Under the pieces are notes generated by a model, which had not been told where the DNA came from, did no database searches, and was given only the letters and a program-made list of their open reading frames with translations. Positions 2,188 through 53,949 of a DNA stretch of 64,000 nt are shown in pieces. Each line of letters starts with the position of its first letter. The first letter of the stretch is position 1. The translations under genes were made by a program, and so were the position numbers. This DNA comes from Rebecca billardiae RCC1528 (taxonomy: Eukaryota; Protista; Haptophyta). Location of the stretch: the NCBI GenBank assembly GCA_965240325.2, contig OZ251249.1, forward strand, positions 496,001 through 560,000, read 5' to 3'.

Positions 2188-3402
2188 TGAGATTGGCACC
2201 TCGGGCGTGGGCCGCGACACGCATGCCAGGTCCGCGCGGCGCTCTGTGGGCAAGCGAGCCAAGGGGCGCAGCGAGTCCGGTGCGGCTGTCGTACGGGTCG
2301 AGCGCGAGCGCCGAGTCGCAGCCGCGCGCGCGCCGCGCCGCTGGCGCCGGGTCGCCCGGGGGAGAAGGAGCAGCTGCACTGCTCCTCTGCCATCACGCGA
2401 TCCGCCGGCAGAAAGACCAGACTTTGCGCCCAGTTTTGACCAAAACGATGGGTTTTTAACTCCGCGCGATCTGGGTAACCTGACAGTTATAGATAGTGGC
2501 TCGGCCCCTTAGCTGTATCTCTGTTTGTGCCACTGGACAGGCATGTGAGCACTTGATTGCCTGGCTAGATGTGGTCTAGCACAGCCCACTCCCTGGCCAT
2601 TCTGACGAGTGGGTGGCTGCTTGGCCAGCTCTCCATGCTGGGCTGTGGTGCCATCCAGAGTGCGGCATGTGCAGCAGCCCAGGTGGGTGCAGCGAGGGGT
2701 GCGGCAGGCAGCAGTGGGTGGTCAGCTTGAAAATCCATGATGCAGGCCAGCCACCAGCAGCTAGGCTGCAGAGCTCTTGGCTGCACCAGCCCCACTCCAG
2801 CCCCCTCAAGTCGGGTGGCTGGCCACCCTCTGGGTGTGTCAGCTGGTGCTGCTGCTGCTGGCCTCCCAGTGCAGGGGAGCTGACCCGACAGGTCCTTGCG
2901 CAGGTGGCCGGGTGCGGGATTGGGCACTGTGCCACCGAGCAGCTGCATCCCATGAGCTCCCCCCCAGGTGGCATGCAGCCCTCCCTAGGGGGTACCAGAT
3001 CCACTGCCAAGCACAATTTAGGCCTGGTCTGTGTGGGCACACTGCCCGCGACCAGTGACGACAAGCCTGCGGCAGGATTGACTGGCCAGCTGCGACAGGC
3101 TGTACGCCTGCAGCCGTGTGACCTGCTGGTGTGCCCAACTTCAGCCCACGCGCGCTGGGGCTGACGCGCTGGGTCGAAACCGTCGTGCACGGGCCGCGGG
3201 GGCCGCCTGGATCAGCCCAGGGGGGCAGGGTGAGCAGTGGCGTGCAGCTCAGTCAGAATGTGACAATTAATTGTTGAGACCCCTGTAAAGGCCTCAGTCC
3301 TGCGCTTCGCGTGCGCGGTGCGGCTGCCGAAATTGACAATGTTGTGCGGCGCCAGTTTTTGCGGGCCGGAAGAATTCGCGGAGATTCCGCGCCCTGCGGA
3401 CG

Positions 3403-4251
3403 ATGGCCGCCGCGCTCGCGCTTCGTCGCTGCCTCGTCCTCTCGCGACTCGCGCTCCTGCCCGGCGCGTGCGCCGGCGTGCCGCCCGCGGGCGCCCCTCC
3501 GCGCTGCGCCGTTTCGATGTCCACCTCGCCCCCCGCCGACGCGGCCGCGCCCGCCGCCTCCGCCGTCCCCTTCCTCTCCGCCGCCGACGCGGCGGCGCTG
3601 GACGAGGAGCTGATGAGCTCGCCCGGCTTCTCGCTCGACCAGCTGATGGAGCTGGCGGGGCTCAGCGTCGCCGCGGCGGTGGAGGCGCACTACCCGCTCG
3701 CCACGCACCCGCGCGTGCTCGCCGTCTGCGGCCCGGGCAACAACGGCGGCGACGGCCTCGTCGCCGCGCGCCACCTCACGCACTTTGGGCGGCGCGTCGC
3801 CGTCGTCCTGCCCAAGCGCAACACGAAGAAGGCGATCTTCGGCAACCTGCTCGCTCAGCTCGGGGACCTGCACGTGCCCGTGCTCGATGCCGTGCCCGCC
3901 GACCTCGCCGCGCAGTACGACGTCGTCCTCGACGCCGTCTTTGGCTTCTCGTTCGCTGGCGACGTGCGGCCGCCGTTTGACGGCGCGCTCGCGGCGCTGC
4001 GGCAAAGCCCGGTGCCCGTCGTCTCGGTGGACGTGCCGTCGGGCTGGGACGTAGACGCGGGGGACGCGCGGGGCGAGGGGTTCCGGCCCGACGCGCTCGT
4101 CTCGCTCACCGCGCCCAAGCGCTGCGCCGCCACCTTCGACGGCGCGCACTTCCTGGGCGGCCGGTTTGTGCCGCCGCACATCGTGGCCAAGTACGGCCTG
4201 CAGGGGCTGCCGCCGTTCAAGGGCGCGGAGCAGGTGGTGCGCATCGCGTAG
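3403..4251 (+). CDS. NAXE: NAD(P)H-hydrate epimerase (YjeF N-terminal domain) with N-terminal targeting peptide
   Basis: Single-exon 282 aa. Contains LDEELM..GFSLDQLMELAG, VCGPGNNGGDGLVAARHL, DAVFGFSF, SVDVPSGWD and LVSLTAPK. Confidence 0.95.
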   Translation: MAAALALRRCLVLSRLALLPGACAGVPPAGAPPRCAVSMSTSPPADAAAPAASAVPFLSAADAAALDEELMSSPGFSLDQLMELAGLSVAAAVEAHYPLATHPRVLAVCGPGNNGGDGLVAARHLTHFGRRVAVVLPKRNTKKAIFGNLLAQLGDLHVPVLDAVPADLAAQYDVVLDAVFGFSFAGDVRPPFDGALAALRQSPVPVVSVDVPSGWDVDAGDARGEGFRPDALVSLTAPKRCAATFDGAHFLGGRFVPPHIVAKYGLQGLPPFKGAEQVVRIA

Positions 4252-4559
4252 GGCGCGGCGCCGCGGCGCAGCGCGGTTGGTGCGGTGGGAAGGTGCGGTG
4301 CCGTGCGAGCTGGCGGCGCCGTCGCTGCGCCGTGAGTGAGGAGTGACCAACGGTGCCGACTCGGTGCGAGCGCTGGCGGTAAGGAGCGGTGAGGAGCCCG
4401 AGAATAAAATGCGCGGATTCTTTTTTATTGCCGGTGGCCCGGTGCGCTAAATTTGCACGCGCGGGTGCCGGGTGGTGGGCGGATGCGCGGCGGAGCCATC
4501 GGAGCCGCCCTTGCACCTCCCGCCCTGCCGCCGCCCGCCCGCGCCGTCGTCGCGCCGCG

Positions 4560-6500
4560 ATGGACGAGTCGATGAGCCCGCTCGAGGTGTACCGCGCGGC
4601 GTGCGCGCGCGAGGGCTGCGAGCCCGTCGCCGCGCTCGCGAGCGCGCTCGAGTCGACCGGCGTGGTGCCGATCGACCTGAACCTGAGCAACGAGCCGCTC
4701 GGGAAGGGTGGCGGTGCAGCGCTCGCCGAGCTGCTCTTCGAGGACCGCTCGATGACGGTGCTCAAGGTGGAGTCGACGGAGCTGTACGACCAGGGCTTCC
4801 AGGCGGTGTGCGAGTCGCTCGAGCGCCACCCGTCCGTCTTCCGCCTCGACGGCGGGTACAACGGCCTGCGCTCGACCAAGCCGCTCGCGAGATTGCTCGA
4901 GATCTCGACCAGCCTGCTCTGCGTGGACGTGTCGGGCAACTCGCTCGGGCCCTCGTTGCTGGGCTTCTCGCCGCTCGCGCCGCTCGCGGAGGCGCTCGCC
5001 AGCGAGCGCTGCCGCCTCCAGCTCCTGCAGCTCGGCAACTGCGACATTGGCGCGCGCGGCGTCGAGGCGCTGGCTGACGGCCTGCGCGGGCAGACGTGCG
5101 TGCGCAGCGCGCGCGCGGCGTGCGCGCGCGCGGAGGGAGATGGGCGCGGAGGGTGGCTCACCCGCGCGCGCGGGCGTCCCGCCTCCGCCCTTGCGCCCGC
5201 AGGAGCGTGCGCCACCTCGTGCTCGACGAGAACGGGCTGACGGCGCGCGCCGCGCCCGCGCTCGCTCGGCTGCTGGCGTCCAACTCGTCGCTCACGTCTC
5301 TCGACCTCAGGCGCGCGCACGGGGCTGGCGCGGTGGGGACGGGTGGGCATGGGCAGCGTGGGGCGCATGCGCCGCGCGCTCACGCGCGCCCCGCCCCGCG
5401 CCTCGCCGCGCGCCACGCCGCAGGTACAACGCGCTCGCAGACGCGGGCGTGTCCGCACTCGCGCCCGCGCTGGCGGACAACGGCTCTCTCGGCTGCCTCG
5501 TGCTGTGGGGCAACAAGATGGGTGCGCGTGCTGCGGGCGCGCGTGGTGGCGAGAGCGGCGCGTGCTGCTGCTGCTGCTGCTGCGCGGGCGGGCGGGAGTG
5601 GGGCGTGGTGGGCGGCGGGTGGGGGCCACCCGGCCCACTCCCGCGCCGCGCCCGTCCTCAACCGCACCCTCATCCCTCCCTGCCTGCCTGCCTCTCTCGC
5701 GCGCGCGCGTACGCGGCGCAGGCGCGGTGGGCGCACGCGCGCTCGCCGCGGCCGTCTCCGCCAACGGCGCGCTCGAGGTGCTGGACGTGGGCGCGAACAG
5801 CCTGGGCTTCGAGGGCGCGGCCGCGTTCAAGGGCGCGCTCGGAGCGAACGTGAAGCTGCACACGCTCGGCCTCGCCTCGTGCGCGCTCGGGCCGGAGGGC
5901 ATCATCGCGGTCGCAGAGGCGCTGGAGGGCAACCCGCGCGTGCGCAGGCTCGACCTGAGGCGGAACGAGATCGGGCTGGCGGGGCTGATGGCGCTGGCGG
6001 CGGCGGTGCGCACGAACGACCGGCTGCAGGACCTGCTGCTCGACGCGCCCGAGACGGAGGCGGACGGCGGCGGCGCCGCGGGGGCCGGCGCGCTGCCCGA
6101 GGGCGGAGGGGCCGCGCAGCCCGAGCCCGCGGTCGAGCCGGCCGTGGCGCCGATCGCGGACGATGAGCTGGCGATGCGCCGGCAGTTCACAGACGCCATC
6201 GCGCAGCAGTGCGCGGCCAACACGCGCGCGGCGGGGGGCGCGGCCGCGCCGCGCTCGCTGCAGAAGCCCGCGCCGCCCGCGCGCGCGCCCGCGACGCCAG
6301 CGCCGCCGCCGCCACAGCCGCAGCCGCAGCAACAGCCGCAGTCGCCGGCGACGCCGCAGCAGCCACCGCAGCCGCCGCCGCTCGCGCCGCCGGCCGGCAC
6401 GCCACCCGCCGGTCCCGCGGTGGGCGTGAGGCTGGCCGTGCATACCGTGTCGGCCGAGAAGGTGTCGGTGCGAGTGCTGCTGGTGCACCCGCACGCGTAG
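4560..6500 (+). CDS. RNI-like leucine-rich repeat protein with Pro/Gln-rich tail
   Basis: Exons 4560-5095, 5203-5310, 5424-5521 and 5722-6500 splice in frame; intron 2 has a GC donor. Repeats such as LQLGNCDIGARGVEALA, LDVGANSLGFEGAAAF and LDLRRNEIGLAG. Confidence 0.85.
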
Positions 6501-18794: not shown

Positions 18795-18819
18795 TATATA
18801 TATATATATATATATATAT
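18795..18819. repeat. (TA)n microsatellite
   Basis: Perfect TA run. Confidence 0.95.
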
Positions 18820-21800
18820 CACAGCGCAAGATTTCGGAAAAGATGTCGTTACGGGCCCCCCCCTGCACCCGCCCGCTCGCGGAAATTCAGCATGGCGAGG
18901 CGCGGCGCGCTGAAGGGCGGGGAGCGTGCGCGCGCAGTCCCAGACTACCCCGACGAATTTCCCCGAGCGTCTCCCCATCGATCCAAGACACCCCGCCCTG
19001 CCCACAGCTCGAGATCGGAACAGGTGCAGTTGAGGTCGCGTGCCGCGCGGGCGGCTCGGGCGCCAGTGCGCACCTTTTTTTACGGATGGCCACAGAACAC
19101 CCTTCTTCCTCGGTGAGGAGGCCATGCACGGCAGCCACAGGTGCGTATGCATTCGACTGAAGCCTGATCCGTAGCCGGCTGCTGCTCCGAGCACGCACGC
19201 CGCTCGAGTTTGGAGCTGCGCGGCACTAGCACTTCTCCGAGGCGATGATGCCAGGCGTATGGGGTCAGATCACTGCGATGGCGCGCGAGGAGGGCGGCGA
19301 CTAGGCGTCGCCGCCAGGCGATAACGGCGGAAGTTGTTGCGGCCCCGCCTCTCGCGGCCCCGCCTGCAGCACTCCGCTTACGGCGTTCGTGTCCACCGCC
19401 CAGATCGAGCCCTCAGAGCGGATGCGGCTCGACGCCTCACACGGCGGGTGCAACCTGCAGCGCCGCCCCGCATGACCCAGCTGCCCGCGCGGCAGCTGCC
19501 GAGACCACGTGCCCGCGGCTCGACCCCTCCGTGTTGACCGCCGCCGTGTCACTACCGCCGCCTGGCCGTGCCGACTGCCCGCTGCCCACACCCTTCCACC
19601 TCCCTGCTGCCCGTGCAAGCCGGAGCTCGCCACCAGCTGCCCGCACTCGTCGACGAGACGCCGATCGCTGGCCCGGCCCATTGCTCATCGCCCGCCGCCC
19701 GCACGTCCGCGCCGCGGCGCCCGCCGCACGGCACGCAGCTCTCGGCGGCAAGCATTGCTGCCCTGGACGGCAGCGCCGACCTGCTCGCGATCCACGTTGC
19801 CGAACTGTCGGAGGCGAACGTGCGCAAGAGCTGTGAGCTGAGCGCCGTGCCGAGACTCGAGAAGCAGCTGCACGCGGAGCGCGCTGCAGCAGCCGAACGG
19901 ACGGCGGCGGCCGCCGAGACGATGGCTGCACTTAGGGTGCTGCTCGGCGTGGCCGAGGCCAAGTGGCGCGCAGCCTCGGCCGATGCCGCCGCGAGCAAGC
20001 CTGCTCGGCAAACCGCTGCGTTCGCGCTTGCCGCTGCTGCTCGGCGTGAGGCGCGCGCGCACGTGGCCGAGCGCGCTGCCGCGCGCGAGGAAGGCGCGGA
20101 GGAGCTTGGGCGGCTCGAAGCGGACCTGGCTCCTGCGCACGAGGTGACACGTGCGGGGTGCGGGCGCGCGTCCCAGGCGCGTGCAAGCTCGAGCTCGCGC
20201 GCGAAGGACTCGGCGCCAAGCCTCCGCGCACGAGAGCGCGGCGGAGGCGGTGGCGGCGGTGCGGCAGCGGCGCACGAGCAGCGAGCAGCCGCGCCATCCA
20301 GTCGGACGAGCAGTGATGAAGTGCTTCAAAGCTCGGAGTCGGATTCACCGTTCACGTCGGTCACGGCCTGCCACGCAGCTGTCGGACTGAGTCCCGGTCC
20401 CGGTCATCGTCCGGCGCTGAGTCGTGACTCGTGGCAGCAGCCGCGCCCGGCGGCGCTGGCGCGCGCCGGCCCGGGCCGGCGGCGGCTCACGGGTAGCAGT
20501 CGCCTGACCATGTTAGAGTCGTGTTATCGACGACCAGTAGGACCGTACGTCGTGAGAGTCATCGCGGAGGCTGCTGAGTCAGCTGCGCCCGACCCGCTCC
20601 GCGCGCCTCCGGTCAGCCTCCGCGCCCGCGGCCGCCTCCGCCGCGCGGGGCCGGCCGATCGGGCACGGTCAGCCGCGCGTAGTCCGCGAAATTTCAACTT
20701 GAATCTTGATTCGTCCGCGACCGGTCCGCGAGTAACCGGCGGTAGTGTGAGCCGTGCTGACTGCGTGACGCCGCGGCCGGGCCCGGGCGCGCGGGTGCCA
20801 GTAGCTATACTATAGATACTAGCTAGGCCCCGGGTGCCAGTAGCTACTGGCACCCGGGCGGTAGCTACTGGCACCCGCGCGCCACCGGTGACCCGCCCTG
20901 CCGCGGCCGCTGTCAGGCCGCTGCCCGATTGACCCGGCGGCGAGTGAGAGTCCCCGTCAGCTCTCATGATGGCCTCACGCGAGGATCGCGCCGGTACGGA
21001 CCGCTGCGACGACTGGTGGCGCGCGCCGACTTCTGTCTGTCTCGTGCAGCGAGCGAGCCGCGGCGCCGGCGGCAGCGGCGGCAGCCGTCGCGCCGCCGAC
21101 TGCTGCGCTGGCTGCTGCGGCGGCGGCGGAGCTTCAACGGCGGCGAGCCGCGCGGCCCGCGCGGTCCGGGCACAGAGCGGCTGTGACACGGGATGCCGGA
21201 CCGTCCCGCCGAGCGGCAACGGTCGTCACGGGCTGCACGTTGGGCTCGGACACGGCCGTGGTGAGGTTGACGAGCGCAAGTACGACCTCGCCGTTGTGCA
21301 TGAACTTGAGCGAGATGACCGCGCTGAACGAGCAGACCAAGTCTGTTCGGCACGCCTCGCCGCGCGTGCGTCGAGGCCGAGGAAGGCTGGGTTCTCAGGA
21401 ACGGTACTGCAGGCGACGGTGCACGCCGAGCGGACGTTCTGCTCCACCACCTCCATACCGCCGAGCGCGACGAACTCGGGCGCACACAGTGCCTCGCGCA
21501 GGAACGCAGCAGTCAAGCCGCTTGCCGCCTGCCGGTCACGTCGCCGAGTCACGCCGCAGCCGCTCATGAATCTTGCGCACCTGCGCGACGAAGAGGGCGG
21601 CGCTGCACGCGGACATGCAGATAGCGAGGTGCGCGACGTGCAACGCGTTCATCGCCGTCGCCAGAGCGCTACCAGACCCACACATCGCCTGCCATGCCGC
21701 CTCGACCGCCTCGCGCGAGCTCCACAAACAGTGCGCTTCTGCCGCGCGAGCACGCTCTGCTGTGTGATCTGGTTGGTGTACCGGTGAAAATGCATCGAGG

Positions 21801-22420
21801 GGCCCTTCGTATGCGGCATTAGACCTCGCACGTCCTTCTCCCCGCCCTTCTTTCACGCCAAGTGTCTGCGCGCGCGGCGATCCGCGGCGGCGGGCAGATG
21901 CGGCCACATGCAGGCGAGCGGCAGAAAGGGCGCGCGTGCATGGTGAACGCGTCAGATGCAGGATACGTGATGCGCATTTTGGGCATCTACACTCCGATCC
22001 CGCCCATCGCCACTTATTCGCCAGACCCGCATCTCCAAGGGGCTCGGCGCTGTGCGCGCCTCCGCGCGCGCGAATGTTCAAATCATGGCCGCGCGTGCAA
22101 ACGGGGTGCAGGTGGACGATGGATGCGGCGGAGCGATTCCTGCGCCGCGCCGCAAATGCGGGGAACTGTATTGCGCAGCTGAAGCGCACGCACCATCGCG
22201 GCCCAGCCAAGCCGCTCGGTCCCAGGCCGACGCCAGCTGGCGACGTTCGTCGCGCGATGGGCGATTTCGACGACATCGCGAAGCGCTCGACCAATTCGCC
22301 TCCGGCCGTCCGCCGGCCGCGTCCAACTGCCGGCGAGGGAGCCGGGTCGGCAGTTATCGCATTTTTTTAATGGGTTCGCCGAATTAGCTTACGGTCGTGG
22401 CTGGCGGGCGATCCTGCGCT

Positions 22421-22423
<3 letters not shown>
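18820..22423. mobile_element. Non-autonomous DNA transposon with CACAG termini (CACTA/CMC-like) inserted in (TA)n
   Basis: Left end CACAGCGCAAGAT (18820-18832) and right end ATCCTGCGCTGTG (22411-22423) form 13-bp TIRs with 1 mismatch. Both ends directly abut TA runs. No transposase recognised inside. Confidence 0.7.
20786..20883. repeat. Nested palindrome / mini fold-back
   Basis: Perfect 22-bp inverted repeats at 20786-20807 and 20862-20883 enclose the perfect 30-bp palindrome CCCGGGTGCCAGTAGCTACTGGCACCCGGG (20829-20858). Confidence 0.9.

Positions 22424-22461
<38 letters not shown>
22424..22461. repeat. (TA)n microsatellite shared by two mobile elements
   Basis: Perfect TA run between the CACAG element's right end and the retrotransposon's 3' end. 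Confidence 0.95.
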
Positions 22462-22464
<3 letters not shown>

Positions 22465-23255
22465 CGACGTGGTATGCAACGGGCAGGCGTCAGAGTCAGC
22501 AAGCTGTAGCAGCAGATCGAGCAGCAGAGACAAACACCAGGATCAGCGCTCCTCGCCGTCGTCCCCCCCCTCATAGTCGCCCATCACTCCATCGCCGAGC
22601 GGAAGCTCGACGCACCGTCTGGCGTCGACGCGCACGCGCCACCGCGGTGGTCGCGGTGCCACGCGTCGTCAGCCGTCGTCTCGAAGTAGTCGTCGTATGC
22701 AGCGCCCCCGCGGGCGCGTGCCCCCGGGCGCACGTGCGCCATGCGCGCGCGGGCGATGAGCATCTTGGCCTGGCCACGCAGGCAGCGCATGCCCAGCTCG
22801 CGCCGCATGGTGCCGAGCAGCGCGCGCTCGGCGGCGGGGCGCGAGGGCGCGCTGAGGCGCGCGCGCCACGTGTCCCGCCCCATCTTGGCGATCTTCTTGA
22901 GGGTGAGGTCCACCTCCGCGCTCCACTCGCCGAACGCCCCCACGACAATCGGGACGATCGCGGGGAAGGTGTCGAGCCGCGCCTCGTATGGGCCCACCTG
23001 GCCCTCAAGCGTGCCGTAGACCTCGCGGTCGAGGAGCTGCAGCTGCTTGCGCCGCTCGCGCGGGACGAGTTCCGCGCGGTGGCGCACCGCACCGTTGCGG
23101 CCGTCGCTCACCCTGTAGCGCGACTGGCTCAGCGAGATGGTCTTGACCTCGAACAGGGTACAGTTGCCGTGCACCTCGGCACTCAGGTCCACCACCGGCA
23201 CGCGCTTGCGGTCCGTGCCGAGCACCGCCTGCGCCTGGGCGGTGGACTGGGCGTG

Positions 23256-23256
<1 letters not shown>
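22462..23256 (-). mobile_element. 5'-truncated non-LTR retrotransposon (RLE type, CRE-like) in (TA)n
   Basis: The reading frame is open from the TA junction (23255) to the stop at 22584. It has a PD-(D/E)xK-like VVDL...FEVKT motif, then AVRHRAELVP, GPYEARL and PIVVGAFGEWS. Flanked by TA runs on both sides. A second copy shares the same 3' end. Confidence 0.8.

Positions 23257-23308
<52 letters not shown>
23257..23308. repeat. (TA)n microsatellite
   Basis: Perfect TA run. Confidence 0.95.
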
Positions 23309-53209: not shown

Positions 53210-53544
53210 GCAGGCCTGCGGCCGCTGCCCTCACCCCGAACTGCCGCGAAGCAGTCGGACCATAGCTGCAGGTGCATGCATGCGGTGGATCCGCTTGCAG
53301 TACGGCCCGTCAATTTAAGAGGCCTCAGGCGGAACCAGACGACGGGTCGTCGGCTTCCGAGCAGTCGGCCGCACAGTGCCCGGTCACTTGATGACGACGT
53401 CTGGACCGGTGTCAACCCGCTGCGATCCGGCCTGGTGAGTTATGACATTCAACTTATCAGTAACTGCTGAATATACTACGGTATTTATATATTCCGATAA
53501 GTCCGCGGCAGGCAGGCGCCGATACTACCGCCGGCGTTATATAT

Positions 53545-53865
53545 TAACGACGTGGTATGCAACGGGCAGGCGTCACTAGTCAGCAAGCTGTAGCAGCAGA
53601 TCGAGCAGCAGAGACAAACACCAGGATCAGCGCTCCTCCGGCCGTCGTCCCCCCGCCCCCCTCGTAGTCGCCCATCACTCCATCGCCGAGCGGAAGCTCG
53701 ACGCACCGTCTGGCGTCGACGCGCGCGCGCCACCGCGGTGGTCGCGGTGCCACGCGTCGTCAGCCGTCGTCTCGAAGTAGCTAGTCGTCGTATGCAGCGC
53801 CCCCGCGGGCGCGTGCCGCCCCGGGCGCACGTGCGCCATGCGCGCGCGCGGGGCGATGAGCATCT
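53545..53865 (-). mobile_element. Second, shorter 5'-truncated copy of the RLE retrotransposon
   Basis: Aligns to 22462-22765 with the same 3' end. Flanked by TATATA and by a degenerate TA tract at 53866-53920. Confidence 0.9.
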
Positions 53866-53949
53866 ATATAGATATCTATATATCTATATATCTATATATC
53901 TATATATCTATACATATATCAATGATGATGAATAATAAGTCTAAGACTT

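Follow-up and report, generated by a model that had tools for sequence, protein, structure and literature searches.

Background

Site-specific LINEs of the R2 type, which bear a restriction-like endonuclease (RLE), serve as models of target-primed reverse transcription (TPRT) and as tools for targeted DNA insertion. The named RLE clades have a CCHC knuckle and N-terminal zinc fingers. In R2 the N-terminal DNA-binding domains position the protein on its target (PMC4838377). Several non-LTR elements are specific to microsatellites, namely Dong (TAA), Togen (TG), Mino (AC), Kibi (TC), Koshi (TTC) and some HERO elements (PMC3812793, PMC4640811). The microsatellite targets listed for non-LTR elements are AC, TC, TTC, TAA, TG and ACAY, and TA is not among them (PMC3812793, PMC4640811). 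Among DNA transposons, Micron, MuTAnT, SaTar and TAFTA target TA microsatellites (PMC4486113, PMC5907723, PMC3812793).

The element described here resembled R2 (R2Bm, R2Tg and R2Pm) in having one ORF, with the RT at its centre and then a linker and a PD-(D/E)xK nuclease at the C-terminus. It also shared with R2 the RH and G.W motifs, site specificity, and TPRT with a precise 3′ end, which we infer here from the junctions. Unlike R2, which targets the 28S rDNA, it inserts at TATAT/(TA)n and produces target-site duplications (TSDs) of 5-16 bp, and no CCHC knuckle, N-terminal zinc finger, Myb domain or HDV-like ribozyme was detected in it. The catalytic lysine was found in the canonical ExK of β-strand 3, whereas that of R2 is in helix 2 (PMC4838377).

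Dong (R4 clade) and Togen (NeSL-related), which we compared by description, are likewise microsatellite-specific RLE LINEs with repeats on both flanks. However, the repeat unit here was TA, and the clades of these two elements are described with a zinc finger beside the RLE. The CRE clade (CRE1/2, SLACS and CZAR), also compared by description, is similar in being RLE-bearing, site-specific and present in protists. Its targets are the spliced-leader genes, whereas the present element targets TATAT/(TA)n and has no N-terminal zinc finger. The CRE-like affinity of the original prediction was not supported: nothing observed tied the RT to CRE in preference to the other RLE clades, and the knuckle and N-terminal zinc fingers of the named clades were lacking. 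TA-tract flanks and arrays of elements in one tract are shared with Micron, MuTAnT, SaTar and TAFTA (PMC4486113, PMC5907723, PMC3812793), but those are cut-and-paste Mutator-like or MITE elements with terminal inverted repeats.

As in other microsatellite-specific non-LTR elements, the repeat unit was present at both junctions far above background, and the TSDs showed that it came from the target. No TA-specific non-LTR element was found in the full-text literature searched, a scope that did not extend to Repbase Reports. Within that literature the TA target is new among non-LTR elements, microsatellite-specific RLE LINEs being already known.

Two copies in the window

The window (the whole stretch of DNA that was analysed, 64,000 nucleotides) lies on contig C33 of the 72-Mb assembly of 41 contigs that was searched as the genome. 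Its sequence is eukaryote-like, with a GC content of 65-82%. The features of the two copies, by position in the window, were:

22424-22461, no strand: target DNA in the form of a TA tract, (TA)19, adjoining copy A at its 3′ end
22461/2-23256, minus strand: copy A, a 5′-truncated dead copy
22461-22583, minus strand: 123-nt 3′ UTR of copy A; a non-autonomous passenger family shares its terminal 33 nt
22584-23255, minus strand: ORF remnant of copy A, 223 codons and a stop, residues 1296-1518 of the full ORF
23142-23189, minus strand: catalytic core D-x13-E-x-K (VVDL...FEVK) of the PD-(D/E)xK nuclease in copy A
23257-23308, no strand: TA tract, (TA)26, at the 5′ junction of copy A
53538-53543, no strand: TATATA (three TA units), adjoining the 3′ end of copy B
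53544-53865, minus strand: copy B, 322 bp, older subfamily
53866-53920, no strand: ATATCTAT-like 8-mer repeat, TA-rich and imperfect, flanking copy B at its 5′ junction

The original prediction, which was made from the window alone, described two copies with a common 3′ end and different 5′ stops. Both minus-strand tails bore this out, the common 3′ end being CCACGTCGTTAA / GCATACCACGTCGTTAA. A 17-nt tail pattern had two matches in the window, as against 0.02 expected from shuffles. In both copies the element ended in CGTCGTTAA and TA repeats followed. Base 22461 may be the terminal A of the element, as the terminal A of TTAA is indistinguishable from the first target base. TA repeats had been predicted on both flanks of both copies, which was literally true of copy A and only loosely true of copy B, because the 5′ flank of the latter is an imperfect TA-rich 8-mer repeat.

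Copy A was identical (100%) to positions 3901-4696 of the 4,696-bp master, the terminal 796 bp. Its frame was open from the 5′ junction as far as a TGA stop at 22584-22586. The predicted PD-(D/E)xK-like frame, open up to the junction of the longer copy, was thus recovered as 223 codons containing D-x13-E-V-K. The remnant included the C-terminal part of the RLE and had no RH helix, RT or start codon. Copy B was 93.8% identical to the master, with three mismatches and 17 inserted bases in seven gaps, and combined the diagnostic changes of the older subfamily with private short insertions. Copies A and B are very probably aborted insertions of one young RLE LINE family that integrates by TPRT at A/TATAT.

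Full-length element and family

A 23-nt tail pattern, with up to two mismatches permitted, detected 506 tails in the genome and none when a reversed control was used. Most of the copies spanning the whole of copy A reached further 5′, and walking upstream led to two copies with 4.7 kb in common at 99.56% identity. The full element was 4,696 bp long. A leader of 16 nt precedes its one ORF, which encodes 1,518 aa, and the 3′ UTR of 123 nt ends in CGTCGTTAA. Six full-length copies were found, representing about 1% of all copies, and the ORF was uninterrupted in every one of them (open frame of 1,522-1,533 aa). LTRs, TIRs and split repeats were not found in the full element, and neither an HDV-like ribozyme nor any other Rfam family matched it. 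No second family of this kind was present in the genome, where RT matches were all at least 82% identical.

The junction census consisted of 50 position-ordered loci (the first 50 tails, L036-L085) and 35 length-biased loci. Taken in genome order, the first 50 tails formed a sample without selection by length. Of these, 43 belonged to LINE copies and five to a passenger element. The remaining two, L065 and L073, had a tail of 23-25 bp with variant passenger-like sequence upstream and were put with the passenger. LINE copies in the position-ordered sample ranged from 27 bp to more than 1,500 bp (median 141 bp), and reached 4,696 bp overall. Identity to the master was at least 99% in 25 of the 43 sampled LINE copies.

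TPRT classically leaves copies that agree at the 3′ end and vary at the 5′ end. The 506 tails, the scattered 5′ ends, the TSDs and the lack of terminal repeats all agree with the non-LTR retrotransposon family with variable 5′ truncation that had been predicted.

Two further patterns were observed among the copies. What set the older ones (copy B, L058, L075, L080 and L081) apart from the master was chiefly private insertions of 2-20 bp, many of them GC-rich or duplicated from local sequence, and there were hardly any deletions. This pattern points to insertion-biased mutation or error-prone copying. Secondly, seven sampled tails were only 27-30 nt long (L036, L040, L042, L048, L055, L061 and L066), and 13 fell within 27-42 nt. 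The 27-30-nt copies started within or beside the 5′ arm of a small hairpin predicted in the shared tail, where reverse transcription may tend to abort or the template to be switched.

Target site

TATA or ATAT occurred in the last 10 nt before the element at 32 of the 41 visible 5′ junctions (window background 1.2%), and the 3′ flank began with TAT in 33 of 41 sampled copies (window background 0.45%). Most copies therefore had TA at the 5′ junction, the point at which the original prediction had been exposed to refutation. In 15 of the 41 sampled copies the element lay against a TA run of 12 nt or more. Tracts of (TA)≥4 made up 0.31% of the window, and the genome holds about 2,400-3,200 tracts of at least six units. 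Sampled junctions without TA numbered about six in 41, and most were accounted for. At L078 another element directly abutted the tail, L046 had a GC-rich stretch that is maybe another insert, and L058, L059, L080 and L081 were old, diverged copies.

TSDs that included unique sequence were found at L041 (TATATGAGTGAC), L069 (TATATATATGCT), L085 (TATATTATAAGC), L082 (TATTTCTGTC) and L062 (TAAATAACC), at L060, where the TSD was 16 bp long, and at L043/L044 (TATATTACGTC), where it surrounded a stack of three insertions that included a passenger. In roughly half of the cases the TSD was masked by flanks of pure TA. The 11 informative TSDs were 5-16 bp long, with a median of 10. When 21 distinct sites defined by TSDs were aligned on the left TSD edge, A occupied position -1 in 18 of the 21, and positions +1 to +5 were T, A, T, A and T in 21, 21, 20, 18 and 21 sites, respectively.

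These TSDs bear directly on whether the TA repeats belong to the target or to the element. A (TAA)n tail is known for I factors, and TA followed every copy here in runs of highly variable length, as would be expected if it were the element's own 3′ tail and the TA at the 5′ side were due to chance or microhomology, with no target specificity. However, the TSDs at L041, L043/L044, L060, L069, L082 and L085 held TATAT together with unique downstream sequence. Since TSDs carried unique sequence on both sides, TA is target DNA and no mere tail. At short targets the 3′ TA run never exceeded the 5′ TSD copy, and thus no tail was added and reverse transcription began exactly at the end of the element. 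TA at 32 of 41 5′ junctions, against a background of 1.2%, is also at odds with a tail. The reading of TA as only a tail was rejected on the TSD evidence, and we give it almost no credence.

Insertion tolerated TATTT and TAAAT, and three TA units were enough. Therefore the target is the short motif A/TATAT. Some targets were isolated TA motifs of 5-6 bp in ordinary GC-rich DNA (L041, L082). The short motif occurs in this genome mainly in TA microsatellites. Of the predicted targeting of (TA)n microsatellites, insertion into TA motifs was upheld (32 of 41 junctions), and a long microsatellite proved unnecessary.

A preference for TA could also arise without target recognition, if insertion were undirected and copies persisted only where they do no harm, in AT/TA islands amid gene-dense, GC-rich DNA, or if open or AT-rich chromatin were preferred regionally. 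Many copies were indeed surrounded by AT-rich islands, and unrelated elements were present in TA tracts too (the TIR element at 18820-22423 and the element at L078/L084). However, the junctions were precise to the nucleotide across the 21 TSD-defined sites, which is more than a regional preference. Copies 100% identical to the master showed the same TA pattern, and the insertions at L041 and L082 occupied TA motifs of 5-6 bp amid GC-rich DNA. We therefore regard undirected insertion as improbable, although, with several unrelated element classes in TA tracts, some regional or selective influence may play a part.

Breaks, or (TA)n in a cruciform or unwound state, might alternatively have provided entry points, either independently of the endonuclease or through a structure-specific nuclease. 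AT/TA repeats are reported to extrude cruciforms, which are substrates of structure-selective nucleases. The R2 endonuclease has been modelled on Holliday-junction resolvases (PMC4838377), and 15 of 41 copies were situated beside TA runs of at least 12 nt. Yet many targets consisted of 2.5-3 TA units, below cruciform length, and regular TSDs of 5-16 bp agree with staggered enzymatic nicks. The RH, D and ExK residues were moreover retained in all six intact ORFs and in relatives. Taken together, this makes a structure-driven entry very improbable, less so only than a mere tail.

Directed insertion at A/TATAT would proceed as follows. The bottom strand would be nicked just 5′ of TATAT, as TPRT geometry applied to the TSDs suggests, and the freed 3′ end would prime cDNA synthesis exactly at the 3′ end of the RNA. 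The TSD would result from a top-strand cut some 10 bp (5-16 bp) downstream, and reverse transcription would mostly end early, leaving short copies. Every insertion would regenerate TATAT on its 3′ side, and head-to-tail stacks such as L043/L044 would be found because each insertion remakes a 3′ TATAT site. The passenger of about 1.16 kb would ride in trans through the shared 33-nt tail.

Reverse transcriptase and nuclease

The ORF comprised, in order, a unique N-terminal region, an RGG-rich stretch, an R2-like RT, a linker without a knuckle and a PD-(D/E)xK nuclease. The fragment in copy A alone had no match in Pfam or PDB sequence searches, phmmer found no match for the full ORF in the PDB, and the ESM Atlas returned only unnamed clusters for the C-terminus. 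Pfam RVT_1 aligned to residues 668-876 below its threshold (15.5 vs 29.6 bits). The RT motifs SCDIRNAFN, GVQQGS and GHDD were present in the ORF. In a PDB profile search, with a profile built from the ORF and five relatives, the best matches among solved structures were R2 proteins (9nl3_A, E 6.4e-11; 9dou_A, E 9.3e-11). Retron RT, group II intron RT and LINE-1 ORF2p came next, in the 1e-4 range.

An AF2 model of the C-terminal 319 residues, made with 11 relatives, had a mean pLDDT of 77.7. All of the top six Foldseek matches of this model were R2 proteins. VIA-align placed it closest to the turtle (R2Pm) and zebra-finch (R2Tg) R2 proteins (Z 14.0 and 13.9, respectively), and its Z to residues 899-1107 of R2Bm (linker and RLE) was 11.7-12.1. 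The R2 matches spanned 188-200 residues at about 3.9 Å rmsd. The next fold after R2 was the influenza PA endonuclease (Z 6.8), which is itself a PD-(D/E)xK enzyme.

Counterparts of the R2 endonuclease motifs were recognised as R.RH (RYRHD), the β2 Asp (VVDL), the β3 acidic residue (FEVK) and G.W (FGEW), and all four matter in R2 cleavage (PMC4838377). The catalytic residues RH, D and ExK were kept in six of the six intact ORFs and across the relatives. The CCHC knuckle between RT and RLE was absent and an acidic VDAYGD...GDH..RYRHD stood in its place. No zinc-finger family, C2H2 pattern or Myb domain was detected in the ORF. The element is a non-LTR retrotransposon in which a PD-(D/E)xK nuclease follows the RT, and the modelled nuclease is structurally closest to the RLE of R2. 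RLE homology was the second point on which the prediction could have failed, and it was present, with a Z of 14 to R2.

Relatives and the N-terminal region

Word-based searches for relatives recovered unnamed proteins and one partial protein of Pavlovales sp. CCMP2436. In an exhaustive profile search the cluster representatives numbered 3,319 with a cut-off of E≤1e-30 and 11,582 with one of E≤1e-10. The ten relative clusters that we examined contained ENA, JGI/IMG or Logan proteins encoded on contigs of 4-9.5 kb and were labelled “hypothetical protein” at most. Metagenome scans for relatives found none. An alignment of 55 C-termini resolved into two groups. The first, which includes this element and its nearest relatives, is knuckle-less with PD...(E/D)xK. 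The second (P0004, P0018 and others) has kept an H..C knuckle and an R2-like D...D arrangement.

The N-terminal 230 aa (L035:5178-5867) were confined to the six full-length copies and were lacking from the two closest relatives, P0001 and P0002. They precede the RGG-rich stretch and a KRRR motif. This region had no match in Pfam, PHROGs or Atlas, and its single-sequence AF2 model (pLDDT 38) was unusable. On reading the sequence we had the impression of a Rha/KilA-N-like motif in it, which we rejected as the searches gave no support. The N-terminal 230 aa are a candidate for an acquired DNA- or RNA-binding module. The original prediction had the endonuclease recognise the microsatellite. The candidate reader of TATAT is the nuclease itself or, equally good, this N-terminal region.

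It is possible, though we would sooner doubt than assert it, that the element represents an undescribed major RLE lineage common in marine protists. Such a lineage would be marked by an acidic D.YGD..GD replacing the CCHC knuckle and by a canonical PD-ExK, with the nuclease or a novel N-terminal domain reading the 5-6-bp TATAT. If so, it would offer a TPRT system other than R2 that is compact and directed to TA by nature. The system is tractable, with six intact copies, the very short target A/TATAT, clean TSDs and a passenger that has only a 33-nt tail in common with the LINE, and its relatives are abundant in public genome and metagenome protein collections. It suits the question of how a protein with neither zinc fingers nor a CCHC knuckle chooses its target, and it helps to explain the confinement of mobile DNA to TA tracts in a genome of 70-80% GC.

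Passenger element and shared tail

The passenger element was about 1.16 kb long (L038:357-1523). Its last 33 nt were common with the LINE, with one mismatch, and beyond these it diverged completely. It had internal tandem repeats of about 180 bp and a long open frame of uncertain meaning. Like the LINE, it was found in TA tracts and was 5′-truncated. The passenger body was clear in five of the 50 sampled tails (L038, L039, L054, L064 and L077). These five and the two variant loci (L065 and L073) extrapolate to about 50-70 passenger copies genome-wide.

We suggest that the passenger is probably mobilised in trans via the shared tail, and that the 33 nt are a probable recognition element for the RT. 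A small hairpin, UGACG...CGUCG, was predicted in the shared tail and is weak evidence for such a role. The tail region of the passenger folded better than shuffles (z -2.5), and the fold of the LINE 3′ UTR was no better than shuffles (z +1.15).

Other elements in TA tracts

Next to copy A, a TIR-type element of 3.6 kb was found at 18820-22423, with inverted ends CACAGCGCAAGAT... / ...ATCCTGCGCTGTG. It lies between (TA)12 at 18795-18819 and the (TA)19 of copy A. The outermost flanks around it were also inverted, reading GAGTAG(TA)n ... (TA)nCTACTC. Since both adjoin it, the same TA tract has received the TIR-type element and the LINE. In addition, a repeat starting TGGCGGGCCGTAGGTCCGCCCCTTGTAGTGCCCGG was found directly after the LINE tail at L078 and after five target bases, TATAA, at L084. 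Present at two unrelated loci, this repeat appears to be a further element family landing in the same TA sites.
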